From assembly GCA_043228905.1 (NCBI GenBank), contig JBHGNT010000008.1, positions 2,418,001-2,482,000 on the forward strand: a DNA stretch of 64,000 bases, given 5' to 3'. A program made the translations under genes and the position numbers. A model generated the notes under the pieces. The model did no database searches. It was not told the DNA's origin and saw only the letters and a program-made list of their open reading frames with translations. Positions 1-48,889 of this stretch are shown here, piece by piece. This stretch comes from Azolla caroliniana. Its lineage: Eukaryota > Plantae > Polypodiophyta. How positions within the stretch are numbered: the first letter of the stretch is position 1; each line of letters opens with the position of its first letter.

Positions 1-418
1 GGATAAAGAAATGAAAGATAGAAAGGAGAAAGAGAAAGAAGGGTGCCGATCCACCCGACCACCCCCGAGCGAAGGGATCGAGACGGACTCGAGCCTCGAT
101 CGGCGTCCCATACCACCGCCGTGGCGTCGAGTCGTACCTGGTGCTGGCGCGCTCGCTACAAGAGTTGACCCACCACACGAGCAGAGTCTCGATGTAGTCC
201 AAAGATGATCAAATGAGGGTAGCTAGGCCTCTTATTTATAGCGATACCCAAGGCCCCCAGGCAAGTTCACACTTGACCTAATGGGTTGTCTCAATCCCGA
301 GGATTAAAAGTAATCCTCCCCTTCTTTACACTCTCGTTTAACCCTCACACTTATCCACGTGTATAGAATACTACGGTAAATTCTTACCACGGGATATTAT
401 ATGGTCATGCCCGTAACA
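1..418 (-). repeat. 3' LTR of the outer element (runs about 37 bp past the window start)
   Basis: Minus strand reads PPT AAAGAGGGGGAG-TA-TGTTACGGGC. TATA box TATAAATA at 233-240 on the minus strand. Bases 1-303 are the reverse complement of 13174-13476. Confidence 0.9.
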
Positions 419-3092
419 TACTCCCCCTCTTTAAAACATTGCACTCTTGCAATGGAAAGTTAGGGAAGTTAGTTCTAAGAGTATTTTCGCGTTCCCATGT
501 GGCATCTTTTATTGATTTATCCATCCATTTTATTTTAAATTCTCGGATTTCTTTAGTACGTAATTTTTTTGTTTTAACATCGAGAATTCTTTCTGGTACA
601 TGTGGTTTAGAAGATAATTCTTTAGAAGTAACCAGAGTTTCAGTCGTAACTGTATTGTCGCCAGAACCTAGAAGTTCTTTTAGACGACTCACATGAAAGA
701 CTGGATGAATTCCGACACCATCGGGAAGAGCGAGACGATAGGCTGATGACCCAATGCGTTTGAGGACTGTAAAAGGTCCACAAAACCGTGGGGCTAACTT
801 AGCGCACTTACCCGTAGACAATGTCTTAGAATTGTGAGGTACACGTAAAAATACCTTCTGTCCAGGGTTGAATACACGAGGTTGCCTATGATGATCGGCA
901 TAAAAACGTGCTCTATCTTGAGCTGTTTTTATATTATCTCGTGCAATATGCAACATATCTTGCATATCCCGAAGAAAGTTTTGCGTACTTCGCAACTCAT
1001 CATGATGTATATTAACATCAATCGGGGCTCGTGGCTGAAAACCATACATCAACATAAAAGGACTATATCCCGTAGACGTATGCTTGGAGCTGTTATAAGC
1101 AAACTCCAAAATTGGGAGATAACGTTCCCATTTTGTTGGTTTTGCACCAACGTATGCTCGAAGCATGTCCTCAATAATTTGATTTACTCGTTCTGTCTGT
1201 CCATCGGATTGAGGATGATCCATGGAGCTCATGCTCAACGTAGTTTCTAACCTCTTAAAGACTTGTGTCCAGAAGTCACTAGTAAACTTTGGATCTCGAT
1301 CACTCACGATATCCATCGGTAACCCATAAAAACGAAACAATTCGTCAATGAATTGGTAAGCCAATTCAGGAGCTGTTACCGTGGTTTTAGTAGCAATAAA
1401 TCTGGCCATTTTAGTTAGTCGATCAACAACAACCCAGATGGCATCATGACCTTTTTGGGTGCGAGGAAGGCTAACAATAAAATCCATGGATATACTTTCC
1501 CACTTATTATTGGGAATGTCCAAGGGATGTAAAAGTCCTGCGGCTTTAAGTCGCTCGGCTTTGTTAACCTGACACTGGTGACATTTAGTCACATAGCTAT
1601 GTATGTCAGGACGCATCTTAGGCCAATAAAATTGAGTGGAGATAAGAACGAGTGTACGATGTATTCCAGGGTGCCCTGCTGAGGGTGCATCATGGCATTC
1701 AAAAAGAATCCTCTTTTTGACCTCGGGTAAATCTGGAACACAAACCTTCCCATTACAGTAGACAAATCGTTAGCAATGTGGAAGTATTCCTTCGAGGATG
1801 TGGTGGTGTCTGTTCCAGACTCAACTCTTGCCCAGTATTTTGTGAAATAACTGTCATCAGGATACTTTCCTCGAAGGTGATCATAAAGATCTGATGATAT
1901 TGCAGTGAAGCTAAGCATGTTAACTTCACGGATGAGACTTAGTGCATCAGCGACAATGTTCATGGAACCTTTACGATATCGTATGGAAAAATCAAAGTCC
2001 TGGATGAGATCAGCCCATCGTGCCTTACGACCTTTCAGGACTTGTTGGTCACAAAAATATTTCAAGGACTCGTGGTCCGTAGTTACCACAAAGTGATTTC
2101 CATAAAGATAATGGCGCCATGTTTTGAGCGCATGTATAACTGCAAATAATTCCTTTTCTTGAACGGTATACCGACATTGAGCAGAATCAAGTTTCTTACT
2201 CTCGAATGCTATTGCTTTACCATCTTGATACAAGACAGCACCTATAGCATAATCGCTTGCATCGGTTTCAACCTCAAAAGGTTTTGAAGGATCAGGTAAA
2301 AGAAGTGAAGGAGCCTTGCAAACCAGGGCCTTGAGTTCCTTAAAGGCAAGGTCTAGTGTAGCATTCCACACAATAGGTTTTGTAGACTTACGCGTTTGAC
2401 CTTTTAAAAGATCAGTAAACGGCGTCGTCAATTGGGAGTAATTACGAAGAGACTTTCGCAAAAACCCCACAAAACCAAGGAATGATCGAACTTCTCGAAT
2501 ATTCCGAAGAGTGGGCCAAAGCTTGATTTTCTCAATGCGAGAAGGATCAATTTCAACTCCTCGTTCGGTTATGAGATGTCCTAGATAAGTAATTGATTTC
2601 TTGAAGAACTCACATTTTGAGATCTTCGCATAAAACTGTTTGTCACGCAATGTTTGTAAAACAAAGCAGACATGTCTAGCATGTTCTTGTAATGTACGGC
2701 TATAAACTAAAATATCATCCAAGAAAATAACGACAAATTTTCCAAGTTGTTCTCGGAAAATGTCATTCATTTCTTGTTGAAAAATAGCCGGAGCATTGGT
2801 CAAACCAAAAGGCATAACCAAAAACTCGTAATGGCCATAGCGCGTACGAAATGCCGTTTTAGGAACATCGTCCTCACTTATTCGTATTTGATGGTAGCCA
2901 GTACGGAGATCAAGTTTCGTAAAATACCGAGCTCCCTAGAGACGGTCAATTAGATCGTCAGCCCGGGGCAATGGATACGAATTCTTGATCGTCACTTTAT
3001 TCAAGCGTCGGTAATTAATACACATACGCCATGTGCCCTCTTTCTTTTTAACCAAGAGAACTGGTGCACCCCATGGAGATTTACTATAACGT
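405..3092 (-). pseudogene. RT-RNaseH-integrase-chromodomain part of the outer polyprotein
   Basis: ORFs 2936-3092, 1589-2821 and 405-1616. In-frame TAG at 2936-2938 (DRL*GARYF) and a frameshift near 1760. The ORF reads through the PPT into the LTR. Confidence 0.92.
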
Positions 3093-3719
3093 TGTCGTGA
3101 AGAAAACCGTCCACGAGCGGAATCGGTGCACCGGAGCGTAGAAACCGACTCTTCATGCACGTGCGCCTTAAGTTGTATATAGGAGATCCTAGGTAGATTC
3201 GGTAGGTAGGGAGTAAAGGGGGAAACGGCTCCTTCCCTGCCTATAAAAGGAGGGAGACGAGGAGGGTAGGGGGATCGCGGAGAGTCGAGGACGAAGTGTT
3301 GTCGGTTTGCGTGCGAAGGCTTCTCTCTCTCTCTCTGGTTCGCAAACTCCATAGCTTCCTTCTGTGCAGGTTTCGGGAGGCTCGCGCTGCTCTGAGGAAT
3401 GCCCGAGTGCTTCCGGCAGCACCTCCAACCTGTTCCTGTCTTTCTGTGCGTTTACGAACAGGTATCGGCATCTGTCCGCCGCCCTGTTCGGTTGTAACCA
3501 ACTTCGTGTTTTAGTGACTCCGTGTTCTTGTCGTTTGTCTTGTCAATACATACATACTTTCGTGTCTTTCTGTGTCGCTGTCCCACTCGCGTCTTGCGTC
3601 GAAGGGCCGTGTCCCTGTGAGTCTACGCTCGCACGTAGTGGGTCTACCTCTCTTGCTCTTTGGTACAGGACCCCCGAGGTCCCGCCTCACTCCACGCATC
3701 CGCGAGTAATACCTCGACA
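3093..3719 (+). repeat. 5' LTR of the nested element (627 bp)
   Basis: Direct repeat of 9419-10051, with about 7 substitutions and a 6-bp (CT)n length difference. TATAAAA at 3242-3248. Confidence 0.97.
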
Positions 3720-3723
3720 TATT

Positions 3724-3741
3724 TGGTGAACCTGACGTGAA
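3724..3741 (+). promoter_or_regulatory. Primer-binding site, tRNA-Trp type
   Basis: TGGTGAACCTGACGTGAA lies 4 nt after the LTR. It is complementary, with one G:U pair, to the plant tRNA-Trp 3' end ...UUCACGUCGGGUUCACCA (tRNA sequence from recall). Confidence 0.75.
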
Positions 3742-3763
3742 AGAGGCGGCAGAAGAGCAGAAG

Positions 3764-5881
3764 ATGAGGGGGTCGGATCTCGCAGAGGCCATGGCTCCGG
3801 CCGTGGATCGGATATTGAGCACACGCGAGGGCACCGGTGCCCTCGACAGAGCCATTGAGGCGGTCGTCGGTACAATCGGCCGTTTCAGCAGAAAGGATGC
3901 TACGAAGTATTTGGCGTCCTACGGGGCGGAAATGCTGATGCGGGACATTCCGGAAGAGAGGCGTCTTGCCGGGTTCCCTCGAGTGGCGATGCCGAGCATC
4001 CATGCGGAGGTGCTCGAGGTACGGGCGGAGAGCCGTACCTGGGAGGAGTTCGAAGGCCGACTCCTAGAGAAATATGGGCTGGACGACGCGCTCCGGCTTT
4101 CGAAACGGGACTTCATGGAATGGGTGGAGTCCCCCGGCAAGGGAAGAAACGCGTCGGCACTCCTCCGGGAGTTCGAAGAACGCTTTGCGCGCCTTTCGGC
4201 GCTTGACCGAACCATTCTGGATACGAGCCGGGTCCTACTGTTCGTCAAGTCGGTGGACGAGCGGGACCGGGATCAAGTCGGCTCCTTGCTGGAAACTGAA
4301 GACGGGCTGACAACCGACTGGACCGCAGTTAAGAGAGTTTGTGGCCGTTTCGACAAACGGCGAGAATGGGCTGACAACGGGGCGGCCGGTGCGGGCTCTA
4401 TTACAGCAAGGAGGCTTGAACCGGCACCGCAAGTGCGAAGGGAAGAAACCCGGGAATGGCTCGAAACCGGTCCGGCTTCGACCAGCATGGTCAATGGCTC
4501 GTCCGGAGGAGCCGCGCTAGAGGAGTTGACGCGGGTGATAAAGGATCTCCAGATCGCCCAAACTCGAAGGGAAGGCGGCGAACCGGCTCGTGACCGACGG
4601 CCGGCAGCGGGGAACAGGTGCATGTGGTGCGACGAGGTCGGCCACATTCGGAAGGACTGCGGCGATTTCGCAGAGGCGTTGAGAAACCGGGTGGTGTACC
4701 TGTGGGAAGGCCGGGTGCACGCTGGCGACACCAGGAGGGCCCTGAGCCGAAATGACGGGCGAGGAGGTATGAAGAGACTGATGGAAGAGGCGGCGGCCCG
4801 ACACGTGGAGGCCATGCACTACTCGGCGTCGGCCGGTATTCGGGTCGGGGGCAGCGAGACCCGAAAGGAGAGCAAAGACGGTTTCTGGTCGGCAATGCTG
4901 GAAAGCCTCGCCGGCGCGCGACTGAGGAAAGATGAAACGGACCACGCTGAGAGACGGGTCCGGGAAATAACCGGGTGGAGCGATCCGGTCGAGGAGAAGA
5001 CGGGCTTCGTAGAAGCCGCTTGCCGGAACTACGAGGCTCTGGTAGAAGAAAAACGCGTGGGAAAAGCCGGGCCATCACAACGGTACGAGACCCGATTCGG
5101 GCAACGACGGAACGATGCCGGCGGGTCCAGCTCGCAAGATAACCCCAGGAAGGGCGGATACCGACTAGGGACGGAAATTGAAAGGACTACGGACCTACGG
5201 AAGGTCCTAGAGGAACGGATCCTCGACAGCAAGGTGGAGCTGTCATTACGGGAGGTGCTAGGGATCGCCAAGAAGGAGTTCCACGACTCCATTGTAGACT
5301 TGGTGAAACGGAAGAGACTGTCGACGGAGACGGAACCGGAAAAACCGGTGGAGGTGCGGACGACGCACATCGACGACTCGGCGCTGGAAGATGAGTGGGC
5401 GGAGAGCCACTATTCGAGGCCACACTGGGCCCGAGCAACCACGGAGACCCCGGTAAAAATCGGAGGTGTTCAGGAACCGGTGGTGGCGTTGGTGGACCAC
5501 GGTTCGGAAATAAACCTAATGTCCATGGACTTCTATAAGAAGGGAAAGTGGCCGATCAACACCAGGCACGGGTGGAAGATACGGGCGGCGACGCGCGCCA
5601 CCGAGGAACTGCATGGGGCCTGCCCGAACGTGCGAGTAAAGATCGGCGACGTCAAGATTGACCAGCACTTCTTTGTACAGGAGACGTCCTCGCATCCGGT
5701 CATATTAGGTGAACCATACATCACGGCGGCGAGAATGGAAACCAAGGTGCTGGACAACGGTTCGGCCTACGCGAGGGTCAAAAGCCAGGACGGGCGCCAT
5801 TCGGTGCAATTTTTGACGGTACGGCCGAACCACGAGAGAAACCGCGAATCCCTCGGTGGTGAGAGTCGGGAGGATTTTTAG
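3764..5881 (+). CDS. Nested element ORF1: gag plus aspartic protease
   Basis: Uninterrupted ORF of about 705 aa from the ATG at 3764. CCHC CMWCDEVGHIRKDC; protease ALVDHGSEINL...VILGEP. Confidence 0.9.
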   Translation: MRGSDLAEAMAPAVDRILSTREGTGALDRAIEAVVGTIGRFSRKDATKYLASYGAEMLMRDIPEERRLAGFPRVAMPSIHAEVLEVRAESRTWEEFEGRLLEKYGLDDALRLSKRDFMEWVESPGKGRNASALLREFEERFARLSALDRTILDTSRVLLFVKSVDERDRDQVGSLLETEDGLTTDWTAVKRVCGRFDKRREWADNGAAGAGSITARRLEPAPQVRREETREWLETGPASTSMVNGSSGGAALEELTRVIKDLQIAQTRREGGEPARDRRPAAGNRCMWCDEVGHIRKDCGDFAEALRNRVVYLWEGRVHAGDTRRALSRNDGRGGMKRLMEEAAARHVEAMHYSASAGIRVGGSETRKESKDGFWSAMLESLAGARLRKDETDHAERRVREITGWSDPVEEKTGFVEAACRNYEALVEEKRVGKAGPSQRYETRFGQRRNDAGGSSSQDNPRKGGYRLGTEIERTTDLRKVLEERILDSKVELSLREVLGIAKKEFHDSIVDLVKRKRLSTETEPEKPVEVRTTHIDDSALEDEWAESHYSRPHWARATTETPVKIGGVQEPVVALVDHGSEINLMSMDFYKKGKWPINTRHGWKIRAATRATEELHGACPNVRVKIGDVKIDQHFFVQETSSHPVILGEPYITAARMETKVLDNGSAYARVKSQDGRHSVQFLTVRPNHERNRESLGGESREDF

Positions 5882-5938
5882 AGAGGGCTGCCAAGGCGTG
5901 GGGCCGAGACAGCCCGGACACTCGGAAAAGACCCCACG
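5872..5938 (+). promoter_or_regulatory. Putative -1 programmed ribosomal frameshift signal
   Basis: G GAT TTT at 5872-5878 sits right before the ORF1 stop, then a 6-nt spacer. Stem GGGCTG(5885-5890)/CAGCCC(5910-5915); loop CGTGGGG(5897-5903) pairs with CCCCACG(5932-5938). The -1 frame is open into pol. Confidence 0.8.
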
Positions 5939-8900
5939 ACTGTACGATAGGTAGGGGATTTTGCTTCTCCGACAGCGGAGGGTGTATGATGGTCGGCATC
6001 GTTGGCGGAGAAAAGACAAGGGTGGAAGAGCGACTTCGAGCGTGCGGAGTTCTTGGCCCGGACGAGGAAATCAGCGGAGCCGTGGAGGCGGTCTCCTTCG
6101 ACGACACCTTGGGGATGCTGAGGAAGGTTGCCGGAGAAGACCTTAACGAAGACCGGACGATACCGGTATGTTCCGAAGAGATGTACGAAGTCATCGCGGA
6201 CTTCAGTCGGGGGCTCGGGTCGGATCGGACGGCCCGAGTTAGCACAAAGTACAAGACTGTGGACCGGAAGGTAAGGCCAGTCGCGGCACCCTTACCGGAG
6301 GGCAGCGAGTCCCGGATCAGAGGGGTTGTGTCGGACCCCAGTTTACGAGATCCGGCCGGCATAGGACACACCTTCACCGACGGGACGCTCCGGGAGCTCA
6401 AAATCGGTGGGGGCGGGTTCCTACTGCCGGCGGAGGAAGACTAGTTTCGGAGGATGCTCGGAAGGCACGGGAAAGCCTTCGCATTCTCACCGGAAGAGAT
6501 CGGGTGCGTAGACCCGACGATCGTGGAGCCGATGGTGATATTCACGGTACCGCATGTGCCGTGGAATCTCAAGCCGATTCCGGTACCGAGAGCTCACATC
6601 CCGAAGTTGATGGAGCTATTGAGGCAGAAGGTAGATATGGGCATTCTTGAACCGTCGAGTGCCCCATACTCGAACCGATGGTTTACCGTACCGAAGAAAA
6701 ACGGAACGTTGCGCTTCATTCAAGACCTGCAACCGGTCAACAGAGTGACCATTCGAAACGCAGGAATCGGACCGACCATAGACGAGTTCGCGGAGGCCTT
6801 TGCCGGAAGGTCGATTTACTCGGTCGGTGATCTGTACTCAGGGTACGACCAGTTCCAACTAGCCGTGGAGAGCAGAGACATTACGACGATGCGAACTCCC
6901 CTCGGCCTAGTGCGAATGTGTACCCTGCCGCAAGGAGGGACTAACTCGGTGGCTCACATGGTAAATGCAATGAACAAGGTACTAAGGGATTGCATCCCCG
7001 ACATCACCATGCCATTTCTGGACGACATCCCGATTAAGGGGTGCCCAGTGGAGGAGAAGGACGAGACGGTCGGGCCGGACGGATGCCGGCGATTCGTGGG
7101 GAAACACATCGACGACTGCGAAAAGGTGCCACAAAGGCTAGAGGATGCTAGGCTCACCTTCTCCGGGGAGAAATCGGCCTTCGGGCAATCGGAAATCCTG
7201 GTGGTCGGACACCTATGTGGGCCATATGGCCGGAAGCCGTCTCCGGCAAAGGTAGAAGCCATCTCCGCGATGAAGACCGACTGTAGCTCGGTTACGGAAG
7301 TCCGGAGGTTCCTGGGGGCATGCGCATTCTACCACATATGGATCCCGCATTACGCCCACGTTGCGGAGCCACTATACGGGTTGCTGAAGAAAGGGCAAAA
7401 ATTCGAATGGCAAGACGAGCATACGGAGTCGGTCCGGAAGCTGAAGGAAGCTCTTGCGGCAGCACCGGGGCTCCGGAAGGCTGTCTACGGGAAGGGCACC
7501 CCGGTATACATAACGGTGGATACGAGTCCGACCGGGATCGGATGGGTCGTCCACCAAGAAGACGAGGACGGCATTCGGTTCCCGATCCGATTCGGCGCGA
7601 AGGTCCTCAGTGAGCGACAGCGAGGGTACGCCCAGGTTAAACGTGAACTCTGGGGTATCGTTTCGGCAGTAAAGGCCGACAAAGACTACCTGATCGGGGC
7701 AGAAGTGATTATCGAGACGGATTGCCTGCCAATTCTCGGCATGGTTTCCGGATGCGCGACACCGGACCTGGCGATGCTCAGGTGGATAGCGTACATCAAG
7801 TCCCTGGACCCGGAGATATGACACATTTCCGGAAAAGACAACGCCATGGCCGACATGCTTTCGAGAGCGAGGTTTGATGACGAGGGCGGCATGGTTTCGG
7901 AGGACGAAGAAGTCGGTGTGGACTTCTTCGAGGCAGCATACGTAACGGCCGATGGGACGAGCACTCTGGCGCTTAACGACTTCGACGAGAGCATGTACGA
8001 CGGCGAGTGGCTCCAGATTGGTGGGTTTTTGAGGACGATGACGCCGGATGCGTCATGGACGAGGGACGAGGCAAACCGGATCCGGAAGAAAGCTTACCGA
8101 TTCTTTCTCCGGGACGGATACTTATGGAAGCACCCAAAGAAGAGGGACGGCGCTCCGCTCCGGGTGGTGGTGATGAAGGAAGAACAGGAGGAGCTGCTGA
8201 CGGCCTACCACGACAGCCCTTGGGCCGGACACCGTGGAACCTGGGCCACATTCGAGAAGATAAAGGGGAAGTACTGGTGGCCGGGACTGTACCGGGACGT
8301 GCATCGATTCGTGACAACTTGCGAGAGCTGTCAGATGCACTCCATAGTCCGACACCGGGACGAACTTCACCCTACGTACCCTCCGGCCATCCACTTCAAA
8401 TGGATGGTAGACCTGGTAACGATGCCGATGGGAGTAGGACAGATGCGGTATCTGGTCCTGGCTCGGGAAGATCTAACGAACCAGGTGGAAGGCCGGGCCC
8501 TTCAGAACAAAACGACTGCAGCCGTATGTAGGTTCCTGCTCGAGGACGTAATATGCCGGTACGGGTGCGTCGGGAAGATCGTGGCTGATCGCGGGGAGTT
8601 GGATGCCGAAGAGGCCGAGGAGCTGTTCGACCGGCTAGGAGTCAAGCTCTCGCTTACCACTGCGTACAATCCGGAGGCGAATGGAAAGGTGGAGCGCGGA
8701 CACGAACCGATCGTCAAGGCGTTAGTTCGGGCATGCGGAGGTCAAGTCGGGAACTGGCCGCGGCTGTTGCCTTACGCGCTGTGGGCGGACCGAACTACGC
8801 ACAGTTCGGTAACCGGATTCATGCCGGCAGAGCTGATGTTTGGGCAGAAGCCGATCATGCCGATCGAACGTACGGTCTCCTCATGGGCAACAGTGGACTG

Positions 8901-9345
8901 GAGAGACGAGATGAGCCGGGAGGAACTGTTGACGGCGCGCATACGACAGCTCGAGCGGAGACCGGAGGATGTGGAGCAGGCTGCGGAAAGGCTTCGGGTG
9001 GCCAGGACGAGGAACAAAGCCCGGTTCGACCGGACGCACCGGCTCCGACCGAAGAAGATCGAGGAAGGCGACTGGGTGCTAGTCTACGACAGCAGCCTTG
9101 ACAACCAGCACCGAGCGACACGGAAGTTCGCAAGAAGGTGGTTCGGGCCTTACGTGGTACAAAGCGCCAACGACAACGGGACGTACCATCTGGCGGAACT
9201 CGACGGTACGAGAATGGCGGTACCGGTAGCGGGGAAGCGGATCAAAGCGTTCAAGAAGCGTCACGACGACGAGCCGGATCCGGTTGACCTGGACCGCGAC
9301 GATGAACGATCCGAAACCGAGGAAGAACCGACGGGCGGGGAATGA
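5878..9345 (+). pseudogene. Nested element pol (RT-RNaseH-integrase) with two point nonsense mutations
   Basis: ORFs 5986-6444, 6454-7821 and 7846-9345 share one frame. Stops TAG 6442 and TGA 7819 look like CAG/CGA C-to-T changes. Motifs: GDLYSGYDQF, FLDDIPIKG, VDTSPTGIG, HHCC (H...GHRG...CESCQ), VDLV/ADRGE/GKVERGH, GPY. Confidence 0.92.
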
Positions 9346-9418
9346 AGGTTGGACAGGTTTTCTCCGTCCCAACACAATTTGGCGCATGCCGGTGGATGCA
9401 CGGTTAGGTGGGGGCGGA

Positions 9419-10051
9419 TGTCGTGAAGAAAACCGTCCACGAGCGGAATCGGTGCACCGGAGCGTAGAAACCGACTCTTCATGCACGTGCGCCTTAAGTT
9501 GTATATAGGAGATCCTAGGTAGATTCGGTAGGTAGGGAGTAAAGGGGGAAACGGCTCCTTCCCTGCCTATAAAAGGAGGGAGACGAGGAGGGTAGGGGGA
9601 TCGCGGAGAGTCAAGGACGAAGTGCTGTCGGTTTGCGTGCGAAGGCTTCTCTCTCTCTCTCTCTCTCTGGTTCGCAAACTCCATAGCTTCCTTCTGTGCA
9701 GGTTTCGGGAGGCTCACGCTGCTCTGAGGAATGCCCGAGTGCTTCCGGCAGCACCTCCAACCTGTTCCTGTCTTTCTGTGCATTTACGAACAGGTATCGG
9801 CATCTGTCCGCCGCCCTATTCGGTTGTAACCAACTTCGTGTTTTAGTGACTCCGTGTTCTTGTCGTTTGTCTTGTCAATACATACATACTTTCGTGTCTT
9901 TCTGTGTCGATGTCCCACTCGCGTCTTGCGTTGAAGGGCCGTGTCCCTGTGAGTCTACGCTCGCACGTAGTGGGTCTACCTCTCTTGCTCTTTGGTACAG
10001 GACCCCCGAGGTCCCGCCTCACTCCACGCATCCGCGAGTAATACCTCGACA
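9419..10051 (+). repeat. 3' LTR of the nested element (633 bp)
   Basis: Direct repeat of 3093-3719, preceded by a purine tract and followed by the TSD. Confidence 0.97.
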
Positions 10052-11800
10052 ACGTATATAACTCATTCGTAAATAGTCCTTGAGTTGCTTAGATACCTCA
10101 TCTTCTTCGAATCGACTTAAGCGATACGGAGGTATACTTATTGGTGCAACACCAGGTACAATATCTATACGATGGTCTATATTACGTTTAGGAGGTAACC
10201 CATCAGGTAGTTCACTTGGAAAAACATCATGAAAATCATTTAAGATTTCATCAAGTTGTTGTTGTTCAAAATATGTTAATTGAATCGGGACATTATCGAT
10301 ATTGTAAACGTGAATGTCCGGATCAAGTACACAATAAAATAACGTAGAACAAGACAACTCGGATATTGATGGACACGAGGAAACAATCGAGAGGGATTGT
10401 TTTTTTACACATTGAATAAAATGCGTACAATCGTTCAGTACAAAAGAAATGGAATGACGAACCCAATCAATAAATAAAGAAGAGTTTTTATTATAAAACC
10501 AGGGATAACCCAGTATTACATCGGTGGTACAAAGATTCATTACATGGAAGTCTACTTCCTCTATATAAGTATCAATAGAAATTCCTAATGAATGAATCGC
10601 CCCGTTGATGTATTGTACTCTTCCATCAGCCAAGTGCACCGTGTAGGTGTGATCACTTACGGTGGGTTGGATTCCCCATATCTGAACCAAACGATCATTC
10701 ACAAAATTGTGTGAGCTTCCCGAATCAAATAAAAATTGTACGGGAGATCCATTGATATACCCGTTTGCACGTAGTAAATCATTGGGACCCAATACATAGT
10801 GAGGGAAAGAACATTGACAATTACTTAAATGATGTGTATAGACCTGAAGGACATTAGGAATCTGACCTTTATGGTCTGCAACTTTAGCTTTGTTGTCGTG
10901 CTCTTTCCGTTGGAGCTTTCGACATTGATCTTTTGTATGACCCTTCTTTTTGCAGAATACACAAAAAGGATGTTGTCGCTTACAATCGCGATCCAGGAAT
11001 TCGTTGGGTGTCTTGCGTTTCCCAACAAATTGCGACTGCTTAGTCCCGGGCGCTTCGTTGGGTTTGTTATGGTCCTTCTTCGAAGTGCGTTGATAGCGAA
11101 GAACTATTTCAACGGCCTCTTCGAAGGATTTTGGATCCTTATCGTGCACTATCCAGTGATAGTCCGAATTGGGGATGCCATTGACAAAACAAGCTATCAA
11201 CCAATTGTCCCCTTCTAGACCCGATTTTTGGATTTGGGTTCTAGCATGGTGAACATAGTCTTCTAGCGAGGAAAATTTCCTGCTAGAGAGGTTCATTAAA
11301 GCTTGTGCTGCCTCGGTTCGAGTGGGAGGTTGCAGAAATTGACCCTTAAAAACCGTGACAAAATCTATCCAGGTATCGGGCAATTTCCCCATAGTACGAA
11401 GCCCACGCCACCAGGCGGCGGCCTTACCCCCGAGTTCTCGGCCGACATATGCAATCTTCGTACTATCTGGCGTGGGATAGAGCTCAAAATGAGACTCCCA
11501 TCGTCCCAGCCATGTGCAGATTGCTTCTTCGGTTCTTTCCTTTTTGTCTCCCGTAAATGGCTTAACGACAAATGATGGTTCGCCTTGTCGCTCATCAGGT
11601 CTATTAGTCTCACGTTGTAGACTAATGACACGTGCCTCAAGAGCACTCTGAGATTGCCGAAGTTCGGTCATCTGTTGAGCGGTGAAACTAAGGTATTGGG
11701 TTATTTGTGCCAAATACATCTCAGTGGACATTTGTCCAGGAGGATTCCCTTGAGTTCCTTCCGCTAGAGCGGATGACATGGGGTCGTTAATTTGAGCCAT
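10052..11800 (-). pseudogene. gag-protease-RT N-terminus of the outer polyprotein
   Basis: ORF 10019-11800 contains gag, CCHC knuckle, DSG protease and FPSELPDGLPPKR...IDHRI. Removing the nested element and one ACGT copy restores [22 protein letters not shown] in frame. Confidence 0.92.
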
Positions 11801-41424: not shown

Positions 41425-43805
41425 ATGGATGATGGCAGCATCTTCATTCATCACTCCTTTAGAGAAGATGAACCACAATTGAATGAATGCAAGATGGTGA
41501 TGGCAAACAATGGGAAAATGATTGACAAGGATATTTATTCTTTTCAAAATGCACAAACAATTGAATCTGTTGTGAATATGGACACTCTAGTATTTACACC
41601 TCCAACGTTGGGGTTGGACATACATCAATGTCAAGTTGATTCTTTCAACAATGCTACCCATATTCGTGCTGTGCAAAACTGTGATGCGTATCTCCATGAA
41701 ATGCCACATAACCTCTATGCAGGTGCAGTTAACAGTGATGGGTATCTGGATTTCCTTGCTCACCAAGGTGAGGGCATGAAGCACAGGTCTCCTGATCTCC
41801 ACAAAGACGAAATACATTCTGAAGCATCTGGGAGAGTCTATGACATAGAGGCATTGGATGGAGAAGCTTACTACTCTGATGCAGTTCCTGAATGTTCAGT
41901 AATAATACAAACGGGTGCAGGATCTGCGGATGCTACTGATGAGAGATCCTACACTAAGAAAGATCTGTCCTCTGCTGAAGCAGGATCTGATAATGAGATA
42001 TCATCACACAATGACAGTGATTCCTCCTGTACTTATGAAGACTACATAAAAGAAAATCTTTTGGGTGTTGAGGATGCTCATGCTTCCCTCTCCATGCATG
42101 TGGAGGAACCTATCATCTCTGGATTTGTTGCTTGCACCAACAATATGGACAAGTTAGCTGCAGATGAAAATGTCATTACGATGCAAGAGACTTGGAGTAA
42201 AATCAGTAGTTCTAATGAAGGTTAGTAATTTGTAGCATTATGTTCCCAAGGGCATGGACCATCATGTTCGTACCTTACAGATATCCATAGCTTGTGGATC
42301 TTTGCACAACTTGATTGTTTATTTTTTGTCACTGACATTTTCATTTTACTCATAGTTAAAAGGAAACACTATCCAATCATAGATCCATACATTAACTCAT
42401 TGTATATATTCTCTGATGTTGCAGAGTCGTCTTTTCATAGGGTTAGGGAATGGGTTAACAATATCCAGCCACTTGATATGCTTCTTCAAGAGGAAGAATC
42501 TATATATTGGAATGCTGGGTGTAGTCAGCCTCAAAATTATGCAGCTGGTGAGCAGCAAATAATCAATGCTGCAGCTGTGCGATCATTGCATCCACTTTCT
42601 ACAGTAGCTCACATGACGGGCGTGGGTTTGCAAGAAGTACCGTCACTAGGGATGTTCAGCTACTTGAAGACATTGAACCTTTCTGCTAATACCATTGGTT
42701 AGTTATAATAAAGACCCAAAGATGGGATTGTTTGTGAGTATATACAATTTAAAAATAATAAATTCAAAGAGAGGAAAGTATGGTTGTACATGTAACAAAT
42801 TATGATTTCAACAGAGTATATTTGTTATGATTTCAACAGAGTATATAAGCTGCAAATAGTGATTCAAATATAGGAGAGCAGTTTTGTACATACATAATTT
42901 CTTAGTAATAATTTAAAAAGGGGTCCTTTGTCTGTGTTTTAACTCATCACAAAATTCATTCCTACAGTTCGAGTGCCAACAGGATGCTTACCACGAACCT
43001 TGCATTCCTTGGATCTCTCCAGGAACAAGATTGTACAGATTGAAGGTTTCAGAGAATTGACTCGTTTGCGTGTTCTGAACCTTTCTTACAACCGGATATT
43101 GAGAATTGGGCATGGTAGATGATATTTTCCTTTTTTCTTTTACCTAGCATCTGTCAAAGCTAATTGCTGACTTATTGTATCTTCCTTTACCTTTATGTCT
43201 AGCCATAAAATGCCTGAAACTTTGAAGGAAATTTCTCTGCAGGTTTGTCAAGTTGCACACTTCTAAAGCAACTTAACTTATCAGGAAACAAAATTGGTGA
43301 AGTAGAAGGCCTTCACAGACTCCTCAAGCTATCTGTACTTGATCTTAGTTTCAATAAATTAACAAGTTCTAAAGCTCTCGATCAGCTTTCTGCAAACTAT
43401 CGATCTCTTTTGGCCATTAATCTCGTCGGAAACCCGTTGATGACCACTTTGGGTGATGACACCACGCGGAAGCTTGTAGTGACCCTATTGCCTCATGTAA
43501 TGTATCTGAACAGGCACCTCATCAAGGTTGGCTCTATGAGGGAAACAGTCATAGACAGTGTTGCAAAAACTGTTCTGGGTACTTCTCATTTGTCGAGTAA
43601 GCCGAGCAGTAAGCCAAGTGTGAAGAAAATAGCAGGTAGACAAGTGGGTATCGTAACACCCAAGCCACATGGTAAGCATGTGAATAAGAAACCGAGTCCC
43701 ATGTCTGCTAATGGCAGAATGCCAATGCAGCAGCATCCCTCTCGTTATCAGCATCATCATCATTATTCTCATTTTCAAGAATCCCGTGACAAACTATCAA
43801 GATAG
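41425..43805 (+). CDS. Plant SDS22-type LRR protein of the outer arm dynein light chain 1 / MASP1-like family
   Basis: Exons 41425-42220, 42425-42697, 42968-43114 and 43243-43805 join in frame. Motifs: SFHRVREWV, LNLSANTI, LHSLDLSRNKIVQIEGFRELTRLRVLNLSYNRI, LSGNKIGEVEGLHRLLKLSVLDLSFNKL. CT-rich leader at about 39.65-39.8 kb. Start codon tentative. Confidence 0.88.
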
Positions 43806-45789: not shown

Positions 45790-47950
45790 TTAACTCCGAT
45801 CATCTGAGGGTGATTGTTGGCTAAGGTTTATGATGTGAGGGTCCGAGTACAAGATGTCATGATGATTGCTATTGTGATCATTATGATGATGGGGCTGCAG
45901 GGTAGTGGTGGAGTGGCCATTAAACCCTGCAATTTGGTCCTGCTCATTGGTGCTGATTTGGTTCATTACATGGGTCTTCATGTGATTGTTATTCATATTG
46001 ATTGCAATGCTATTGAGTTGGTTCCTCAGGCACTTGTTGTCATGCAGGAGGTGGGCAACTTGTTGCTGCAGCTGCACATTCTCATCCATGAGCATCGTGT
46101 TCATCGCGGTCAGCTTCCCGTTCAAGCACTGCAGCCTCGCCGACTCCTTCCGTTGCTTCTCGCGGCACCTGCATATTCATATATATTGAAAAAAGTCAAG
46201 GTGAGTCAAGGAATGGGCAGTGGGTTATGGGGGGGGGAGTCAATGCCTTGAAAAACAGTCAAGGTGAGAGTCAAAGTGGTTCATGTACTTCCATGAAAGT
46301 CAATGATAAAGTAGAGAAGGAGTCAATGAAAGTAAAGATAAATGATGACTAATATTGCTGAAGACCATTAGGAGAAAGGGCAATGACAATGCATGGTGCG
46401 CGATATGGTGTAATTTGTAACAATGTAGTCAAGGAAAGTCAAGCTAGATGATGGACACATGGAGTCACTGATCCTTTGGGTTTGAACTTTGAACCATTAG
46501 GAGAAAGGGCAATGACAATGCATGGTTGGAGATATTATGTAACAATGTAGTCAAGGAAAGTCAAGCTAGATGATGGACACTCGGAGTCACCGATCCTTTT
46601 GAGTTTTGAATCATTAGGAGACGGGGCGATCACAATGGATGGTTACGAGATATGATGTACAATGATGTAGTCAAGGAAAGTGAAGCAAGATGATGGAGAG
46701 TTTGGAGAGAGGACTCCTTTGGGTTTAAACCATTAGGAAAAACCACAATGAGTTGTCTACGAGATATATGGAGCTACATGAATGTGGTCAAGGAAAGTCA
46801 AGCTACATGATATTGGAGCACTTGTAGTCAAGGCTAGTGAAGCAAGGTGATGGACAGTTGGGAATTAGGGAGCGGGGCGGGAGGGGTCCTTTGGGTTTGA
46901 AGCATTAGGAAAAAGCACACTAGATATAGCATAAGAATCCGGTCAAGGAAAGTCAATCTACATGGTGTTGGACATAATTGTAGTCAAGGAAAGTCAAGCA
47001 AGATGATGGACAGTTGGGGGCAGGGGGTTCTTTGGGTTTAAACCATTAGGAAATACATATCACAATGGTTTGTCTATTAGATAAGGCATAAGAACGTGGT
47101 CAAGGAAAATCAAGCTACATGATTTGTCTATTAGATAAATCATAAGGCATAAGAATGTGGTCAAGGAAAGTCAAGCTACATGATATGTCTATTGGATAAA
47201 TCATAAGGCATAAGAATGTGGTCAAGGAAAGTCAAGCTACATGATTTGTCTATTTGATAAATCATAAGGCATAAGAATGTGGTCAAGGAAAGTCAAGCTA
47301 CATGATTTGTTTATTAGATAAATCATAAGGCATAAGAATGTGGTCAAGCTACATGATTTGTCTATTAGATAAATCATAAGGCATAGGAATGTGGTCAAGG
47401 GAAGTCAAGCTGCATGATGTGGTCAAGTCAAGAAATTAGGTCAAGGCAGATGAATTTACCGTCTGTTCTGGAACCAGACTTTGATCTGCTGCGGGTCAAT
47501 GTTGCAGAGAGGCGCGCAGTCACGCACGAGCAGGAGCCTTTGCTGCAGGGTAGGCTTAGGGCATTGCCTGTACAGCCTCTCTAGGGCTTCCACTTGCTCG
47601 CTGGTATACCTCACATACTTCATATTGCCATGGCCATGGCCATGGCCATTGCCTGCTTGGCCAATACTGTTGATCACCTGGCTATGGCCAACGATCATGT
47701 GCCCCTGCAGCATGTCTGCTCCATTCGTCTTCATCGCCATGTCCTGCATCTGCTCCATGCCGCTGCCGTTGTGGACAGTGTTCATGCCCATGAATTGCTG
47801 GGCTTGGTGCTGATTCTGACGATCTGTGCTGCCAGCACCAGCACCAGCACCACCACAGATGTAGCTATGGCGATTATTAGTGGAGGTAGTGTGCAGGACA
47901 TTCAGGTTCTCCTCCGCCTGCAGAACATCATTGAGATCAAACCCCTGCAT
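45790..47950 (-). CDS. Class III HD-ZIP-derived protein with homeodomain and leucine zipper only (~289 aa)
   Basis: Exon 1 47460-47950 (CG|GTAAAT), exon 2 45790-46168 (TGCAG|G). KYVRYTSEQVEALERLYRQCPKP...NIDPQQIKVWFQNRR|CREKQRKESARLQCLNGKLTAMNTMLMDENVQLQQQVAHLLHDN matches the C3HDZ signature and intron position. Stop at 45790. Confidence 0.88.
46190..47450. repeat. Hierarchical intronic tandem array (about 120-bp older units, 61-bp younger units)
   Basis: CCATTAGGA...GTCAAGGAAAGTCAAGC units at about 46365, 46494, 46612, 46730, 46901 and 47043. Near-identical 61-bp units run from about 47096 to 47410. Confidence 0.92.
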
Positions 47951-48889
47951 GCTACTGCTAAACTGCTACTTCTGCTGCTGCTTAATCAGGTCGCTAATTA
48001 GGGCTTAATTAAGCAGGTGGATGCTTAATTAATTAAGCAAGGCGGTTGAAGGGTAGCAGGAAATCAATGCAGAGATTTGTACTGCTACTACTGCGTATAC
48101 GTATATGGGTGGCGGTGCTGCCTTCACATACATACATACATATATATACATGTATATAATGTATGTACATACGTATATGTATACGTATACGTATACGTAT
48201 TTTATTTATACGTATGTATGCAGCCGTTGTGTGTAAGAAGCGTCTGGCTACATAGATATATGTATGAGAGAGACTGTAGAGAGAGGAAATTCGTATTTTT
48301 GTTTTATCTATTTATTTATTTTATTATTTATTTCTTTAACCCCCCCGCCCGTGAGTGAGTGGTGGTGCCCCTTCCCTTTTTTTAAAACAAAATTAATTAA
48401 TTAATTAATTCCCAATTTACACATATGTTTATATGTGTACATTTTTTTTTTTTAACTCTCATCGAATTCCTATAGTTTTACGTTTTTAATGTAATATATT
48501 TATATAAAATTTATTATATATATATATATATTTCATCTTTGTTTTATTTTTTTATAAAATTTTGTTTTCTTTAATTTATTTGAATTTTTTTCAGTTTATC
48601 TAAAATTAATAAACACTTGTTTTTCATCTATTCTGTTACCATGCTCTTTGCATTTATGCACACATAGATTTAAAAATAATTAATAAAAAAATAAAAAAAT
48701 AAAGATAATTCTCTCTCTGTCTCTCTCCCCACCACTACTCTCACTCTCCATGGAAGACTGTTAAAGAAAGTGTTGGTTACATTCATGTCCACATGATCCA
48801 CATGTGATGGTGGTGGTGATGATGATCATCATCATCACTCATGAATCCTTTGAGATGATGGATGATGCCCTTTTAATGCATGCATACTG

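Follow-up and report, generated by a model that had tools for sequence, protein, structure and literature searches.

What is a class III HD-ZIP (C3HDZ) gene that ends shortly after its leucine zipper? The question is raised by a locus in the fern Azolla caroliniana, found within a 64,000-nucleotide stretch of genomic DNA (assembly GCA_043228905.1, contig JBHGNT010000008.1, positions 2,418,001 to 2,482,000) that we refer to as the window and number from its first letter. Genes of this class regulate leaves and meristems, and their products normally bear lipid-sensing domains. A two-exon frame on its minus strand encodes a homeodomain and a zipper and then runs into a stop codon. Such a frame could be a gene in its own right, the relic of a partial duplication, or the visible front of a full-length gene. 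We consider it very probable that this is a real, conserved and truncated gene. The best explanation overall, which we hold to be probable with somewhat less confidence, is that of a functional fern gene that descends from a C3HDZ ancestor, was truncated after exon 2 and modulates HD-ZIP III activity.

A two-exon gene of class III type

The frame, read directly from the sequence, starts on the minus strand with an ATG at 47950 and extends over 164 codons to ...IKVWFQNRR. Exon 1 comprises 491 nucleotides (nt), the last of which encode ...WFQNR followed by the letters CG, so that an Arg codon is split across the intron. The predicted donor reads CG/GTAAAT (GT at 47459-47458) and the acceptor TGCAG/G (AG at 46170-46169), the latter preceded by an AT-rich tract. 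Exon 2 extends over 46168-45793 on the same strand (376 nt, 125 codons); its G at 46168 completes the Arg codon and is followed by CREKQRKESARLQ. The two exons together provide 867 nt, or 289 codons. This exon/intron model was derived from the genomic sequence alone. A word search additionally identified a close copy of exon 1, encoded on a genomic contig of 1 kb from a different assembly (L001), the product of which (P0001) is 82% identical over the whole exon. The features of the locus, in the direction of the gene, are as follows:

47951 to 48040, minus strand: leader or proximal promoter with clustered TAATTA palindromes (sequence reading; 90% identity with L001)
47460 to 47950, minus strand: coding part of exon 1, comprising a 110-residue N-terminal region and the homeodomain to WFQNR(R) (open reading frame, Pfam, L001)
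47460 to 47620, minus strand: homeodomain helices 1-3 (first part), of class III type, with a four-residue insertion between helices 2 and 3 (Pfam, tblastn)
46169 to 47459, minus strand: phase-2 intron of 1,291 nt after WFQNRR (GT..AG borders)
46015 to 46168, minus strand: start of exon 2, with the end of helix 3 (CREKQRKE) leading directly into a six-heptad leucine zipper (sequence, tblastn)
45793 to 46011, minus strand: N/H/Q-rich tail of 72 residues, the first codon of which (46011-46009) is Asn52 beside the zipper (no matching relative)
45790 to 45792, minus strand: stop codon TAA (sequence reading)

The original prediction had described a frame of about 289 amino acids (aa) with canonical splice sites, a complete homeodomain and zipper, and an N/H/Q-rich tail, and our reading of the sequence and the Pfam results agree with that description. 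The Pfam homeodomain family (PF00046) matched residues 111-164 of exon 1 with an E value of 1.7e-13. We also searched the window by tblastn (E ≤10, word size 2). The five full-length queries were class III proteins of Musa, Ceratopteris, Adiantum, Cunninghamia and Actinidia; seven shorter queries were used alongside them. Matches were confined to 47620-47459 and to 46170-~45900; the remainder was noise (E >0.2, for the 64-kb window). In these alignments the homeodomain is 54-74% identical to class III proteins (54-69% to canonical ones), and for the zipper identity is 50-63% with canonical proteins and 67-72% with the short fern proteins described below. Helix 3 retains every residue that contacts DNA (W, F, Q, N, R and R), and leucines at exon 2 residues 12, 19, 26, 33, 40 and 47 form six heptads, all of which are kept.

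The combination of a homeodomain and a zipper is also the layout of HD-ZIP I and II proteins. Unlike those proteins, the window gene carries the class III insertion, junction and intron and has a class III placement in the tree, and it lacks a HALZ domain (PF02183 matched neither exon in Pfam). The position of its phase-2 intron, directly after WFQNRR, is the canonical class III position. Read-through open reading frames of canonical genes break at that same point (P0003, P0008, P0028, P0121, P0127 and P0149), and a 917-bp contig described below (L002) shows an intron there directly. Judged by its CREKQRKE (WFQNRRCREKQRKE) junction, four-residue insertion, intron position and tree placement, the gene is class III by descent.

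Canonical class III proteins (REVOLUTA, PHB and CNA; P0194 of Ceratopteris, 893 aa; P0212 and P0335 of Adiantum, 836 aa) share the insertion, the CREKQRKE junction and the phase-2 intron with the window gene. They differ from it in possessing START, SAD and MEKHLA domains and a miR165/166 site, all of which the window gene lacks, and in their length (about 840-900 aa versus 289 aa). The window gene also evolves much faster and belongs to a clade of its own.

Short counterparts in other ferns

Proteins consisting of little more than a homeodomain and zipper, which the original prediction had proposed seeking among ferns, are annotated in Ceratopteris and in two Adiantum species: P0325 of C. richardii (KP509_05G016600, 161 aa), P0250 of A. 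capillus-veneris (GOP47_0027663, 162 aa) and P0002 of A. nelumboides (L7F22_051693, 157 aa). In three fern genomes, genes of this type thus already bear the label ‘hypothetical protein’. All three proteins end 9-12 residues past the zipper, in sequence that lies after the ancestral exon 2, and they have in common with the window gene the derived residues KP[ST]L.QR, N[IV]D, LNGKLT and ENVQLQQ.VA. Their identity to the window exons is 67-74%, versus 50-69% for canonical proteins, and a profile of the short clade gave scores of 247-307 bits for its members versus at most 196 for canonical fragments, a comparison that is partly circular. The annotation places no further gene in the 10 kb flanking each side of the two Adiantum loci (P0002 and P0250).

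A tree computed from 115 HD-ZIP columns and 39 rows, in which the two window exons were entered as separate rows, placed both exons, L001 and the three short proteins in one clade (support 93/87; 84/88 when L002 is included). Placed outside each of three canonical fern clades, this clade arises from a polytomy of vascular plants that the tree leaves unresolved. It unites the window gene with proteins of the Pteridaceae, and the truncation is therefore older than the split between this fern and that family. The tree, the tblastn matches, the class III junction and the intron thus agree with the prediction of a truncated C3HDZ paralogue that retains an intact homeodomain and zipper. As a separate observation, the third of the canonical fern clades (P0212 and P0335 of Adiantum) groups with a conifer protein, P0231 (Cunninghamia HDZ1; 90/87), apart from the sampled angiosperm sequences, a placement consistent with an old euphyllophyte paralogue.

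The short proteins resemble the window gene in their truncated layout, derived residues, loss of the exon 2 donor and clade. They differ in their ends, which comprise 40-47 residues at the N-terminus and 9-12 at the C-terminus (110 and 72 in the window gene), and in the intron, which is 1.3 kb in the window versus about 70-120 bp as implied by the Adiantum gene spans. The size and tail predicted for the window gene are therefore not traits of the family, the counterparts of which measure 157-162 aa. The long tail, the 110-residue N-terminus and the size of 289 aa appear instead to be specific to the Azolla lineage.

Two further sequences extend this group. The first, P0098 (UniParc UPI00000A4DC9, an early number; partial), falls into one 90% cluster with P0325 of Ceratopteris, is spliced across WFQNRR/CREKQ and differs from P0325 solely at its C-terminus, where it reads FRFPTVSLM versus SDSPLSL-stop, as one extra base would give. 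We found no record of P0098 as a called gene. Its spliced state and its one-base frameshift end hint at an origin in messenger RNA (mRNA) or complementary DNA (cDNA), so that the gene type is probably also on record as an old Ceratopteris cDNA. An extra Ceratopteris intron after ...SSTPSH was considered and rejected, since the one-base frameshift better explains the difference between the two sequences. On the second, L002, a homeodomain exon, of which the contig holds the end (..HVEPRQIKVWFQNRR), is separated by an intron of 455 bp from a zipper exon of ENVRLQ type that is followed by a poly-Q run and a stop codon; the contig may belong to the short clade as one of its remoter members.

We examined the fold of the group using an AlphaFold2 model of the natural orthologue P0325, computed from a 34-row alignment and used in place of the window protein. 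The model comprises helices at residues 50-62 and 68-77 and one continuous helix at residues 86-150, with predicted local distance difference test (pLDDT) values of 94-98, while both ends are disordered. The closest structure in the PDB is the HD-ZIP-DNA complex of PDF2 (9lpe; 39% identity, root-mean-square deviation 2.5 Å). The four-residue insertion is visible as a gap versus PDF2 in the alignment of P0325, and the window homeodomain is equally long.

Missing exons and maintenance of the frame

The tblastn searches revealed no START-like or MEKHLA-like sequence in the whole window, of which 45.8 kb lie downstream and 16 kb upstream of the gene. Six-frame pattern searches of the window for START hallmark motifs gave zero matches, Pfam found no START domain in either exon, and the miR165/166 site pattern had zero matches in the 64 kb at up to three mismatches. 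The predicted absence of START, MEKHLA and the microRNA site is borne out by these scans. The window is also free of N and of gaps. Since the gene is judged to be under purifying selection and recurs in other ferns, we take it to be neither the product of the assembly break that the original prediction had allowed for nor a recent pseudogene.

The sequence at the end of exon 2 offers an explanation for the truncation. In canonical genes the GT of the donor comes directly after the ...QQLQ[N/S] that closes exon 2, and it appears as Val in P0243, P0246, P0248, P0121 and P0149, whereas the window has AAT/AGC at the site of that donor. With this donor lost, the frame continues to the stop codon. 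Downstream, a convergent leucine-rich repeat (LRR) reading frame ends at 43805, 1,985 bp from the HD-ZIP stop, with noncoding sequence between them.

These observations bear directly on the idea that the locus is a normal, full-length C3HDZ gene, whose START and MEKHLA exons either lie beyond the window or dropped out through mis-assembly, and whose stop codon is skipped by splicing. Introns in ferns can reach a great length, and exon 2 holds two GT sites (45969 and 45925) that are potential donors. Given that the window holds no START, however, those exons would have to sit more than 45.8 kb away, beyond another gene. The empty flanks on both sides, the convergent LRR gene 2 kb downstream, the uninterrupted assembly and the missing canonical donor all argue against such an arrangement, as do the counterparts, which are annotated at 157-162 aa (two of them on records of 143-210 Mb) and which at the two Adiantum loci have no neighbouring gene within 10 kb. 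We regard a full-length gene as very unlikely.

A comparison with L001 allowed us to ask how the frame has been maintained. Over exon 1 the two sequences are 91% identical at the nucleotide level and differ by five indels, all of them multiples of three, and by 18 synonymous and 14 non-synonymous substitutions (dS 0.23, dN 0.04, omega 0.18). The ratio of non-synonymous to synonymous change, a check put forward with the original prediction, lies far from 1, and by this measure the gene is judged to be under purifying selection.

Behind the zipper, the tail is open solely in the coding frame, with a probability of about 0.03 as calculated from its own base composition, and composition shifts at the stop codon, from C 29% and T 21% before it to C 19% and T 38% in the 3' flank. 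Residues 84-125 of exon 2, used as a query, were matched by no protein among 1.84 billion representatives, and matches to the exon end at residues 55-83. Homology of the tail to canonical exons 3-4 was also considered and rejected, the alignment being suggestive only by way of low-complexity residues.

Tandem repeats swell the intron (61 bp in 5.7 copies at 47081-47418, and 122 bp in 2.7 copies at 46364-46697). Both arrays are built around a CTTGACTTTCCTTGACC core, which recurs in the intron of L001.

The locus might alternatively be a dead or dying fragment, produced by partial duplication of C3HDZ exons 1-2, in which the open frame is a functionless leftover. Its repeat-filled intron, the low-complexity tail without relatives, the long branches in the tree and the want of transcript support all speak for such a fragment. 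It is harder to reconcile with a frame that has survived five in-frame indels at an omega of 0.18 relative to L001, with helix 3 contact residues and six heptad leucines that are intact, with a tail open solely in the coding frame, and above all with the same truncated layout and derived residues in three other fern genomes. A relic of this kind therefore seems to us quite unlikely.

Several points nevertheless weigh against a functional, conserved gene. The short clade lies on long branches and is fast-evolving, which could also mean relaxed constraint. Omega was estimated from 32 substitutions in a single exon pair, and L001 could be a paralogue instead of an orthologue. The tail is without comparative support. 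In the collection of sequences searched, each short fern protein was found on one genome contig and none on a transcript-sized contig, and expression may therefore be low or restricted; a search of sequencing runs listed none that holds the stretch, and two runs labelled with the same species contained next to none of its words. Finally, dimerisation, DNA binding and antagonism by the protein are steps that we infer.

Upstream of the coding sequence, palindromes cluster at 47980-48040, 30-90 nt before the ATG, and comprise two GCTTAATTAAGC-like copies, TAATTAG and TGATTAAG. Three of the nine CTTAATTAAG-like matches in the window lie at 48004-48037. Between the window and L001, identity amounts to 90% in the leader stretch and to 56% in the intron. 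The cluster could be a candidate autoregulatory or homeodomain-binding element in the leader. An AT-rich microsatellite zone, which includes 48136-48172, is also found upstream of the gene.

Elsewhere in the window, the convergent LRR gene (41425-43805, plus strand) is multi-exon; its last reading frames match LRR_4, LRR_1 and LRR_6 and end in a basic, H-rich C-terminus. The region 405-11800 contains nested Ty3/gypsy-type reading frames on both strands (gag, protease/reverse transcriptase, and integrase with a chromodomain-like end), in which an AT-rich element is interrupted by the insertion of a GC-rich one.

Possible modes of action and relation to LITTLE ZIPPER proteins

The preferred explanation, a functional gene truncated after exon 2, suggests the following course of events. 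A C3HDZ ancestor would have lost everything after its ancestral exon 2 while retaining the phase-2 intron after WFQNRR, and loss of the exon 2 donor would have let the frame run on, for 9-12 residues in Ceratopteris and Adiantum and for 72 in the window gene. The predicted product joins the homeodomain straight to a class III zipper, with disordered ends and without START, SAD or MEKHLA. It would act as a nuclear dimer, pairing through the zipper with itself and probably also with full-length C3HDZ proteins; the latter pairing is proposed because the zipper is about 60% identical to theirs and all heptad leucines are kept. Such a dimer would bind C3HDZ-type sites in the absence of a START-SAD-MEKHLA module and would escape regulation by miR166.

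Experiments in Arabidopsis indicate what the loss of START might entail. START-deleted CNA produces neither up-regulation of targets nor a phenotype (PMC11564692), and START-deleted PHB still occupies ZPR loci (PMC11564692). Because the one is inactive and the other still bound, a natural START-less protein would most simply be a competitor or attenuator. Lacking the START domain needed for target activation, the fern protein may thus restrain HD-ZIP III, an action that would resemble that of a microProtein that keeps its DNA-binding domain. We put forward this particular mechanism, a miR166-immune, START-less competitor or attenuating partner of HD-ZIP III, as a possibility and not as an expectation.

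The N-terminus of the window gene raises a different prospect. The window and L001 agree in all of its first 20 residues (MQGFDLNDVLQAEENLNVLH, window 47891-47950) but differ over the next ~50, which contain indels. This invariant block is missing from the Ceratopteris and Adiantum counterparts and holds the residues FDLN. The core of the EAR repression motif is (L/F)DLN. The FDLN of the window gene resembles that core, a resemblance that we treat as a lead only. On its strength the protein could be a transcription factor that acts autonomously, most probably as a repressor of a separate set of targets, instead of modulating C3HDZ dimers; its layout of EAR-like motif, homeodomain and zipper would be HD-ZIP II-like. 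The conservation of the block beside a variable stretch, the likeness to the EAR core and the intact homeodomain would suit such a factor. On the other hand, FDLN lacks the usual trailing proline and a four-residue match is weak; the motif is missing in Ceratopteris and Adiantum and so cannot explain the whole family; and a zipper that is about 60% identical to canonical class III leaves heterodimers likely. An autonomous repressor is therefore unlikely in our view; a repression motif at the N-terminus in the Azolla lineage, if that is what it is, would parallel HD-ZIP II proteins.

The gene also invites comparison with the LITTLE ZIPPER (ZPR) proteins. Both are C3HDZ derivatives that arose by domain loss and kept a class III-type zipper, and both would be expected to act through that shared zipper. 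ZPRs, in contrast, measure about 70-105 aa, have no homeodomain and form heterodimers that are unable to bind DNA, whereas the window gene keeps an intact homeodomain. Our search with exon 2 among the 1.84 billion representatives returned no ZPR, and an atlas search returned only unnamed streptophyte clusters.

According to two later texts (10.1101/2025.07.30.667799, PMC5381583), Floyd et al. 2014 showed that ZPRs originated from a duplicated C3HDZ gene at the root of ferns plus seed plants; one of the two paraphrases that work as describing genes that were ‘sequentially shortened’ (PMC5381583). A full-text literature search found, among the papers it covered, none on HD+ZIP-only class III paralogues in ferns. 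An earlier description is possible, and the 2014 study may describe fern intermediates.

We offer, tentatively and as a somewhat unlikely extension, the idea that these fern genes represent microProtein evolution at a living stage in which the homeodomain is still attached, either as a fern branch of the lineage from which the ZPRs of seed plants arose or as a parallel run. Through DNA-bound, START-less dimers they would then add a miR166-immune level of control to HD-ZIP III, to which the Azolla lineage may add an N-terminal repression motif.

HD-ZIP III, miR165/166 and ZPR together make up a patterning module that is among the best known in land plants. Domain-based surveys of the family may miscount genes of the present type, which carry the label ‘hypothetical protein’. 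Ceratopteris is transformable and carries a counterpart (KP509_05G016600), which makes direct testing possible. The origin of ZPRs from a multi-domain ancestor has been deduced mainly from end states, and genes of the type described here would provide a natural intermediate architecture.

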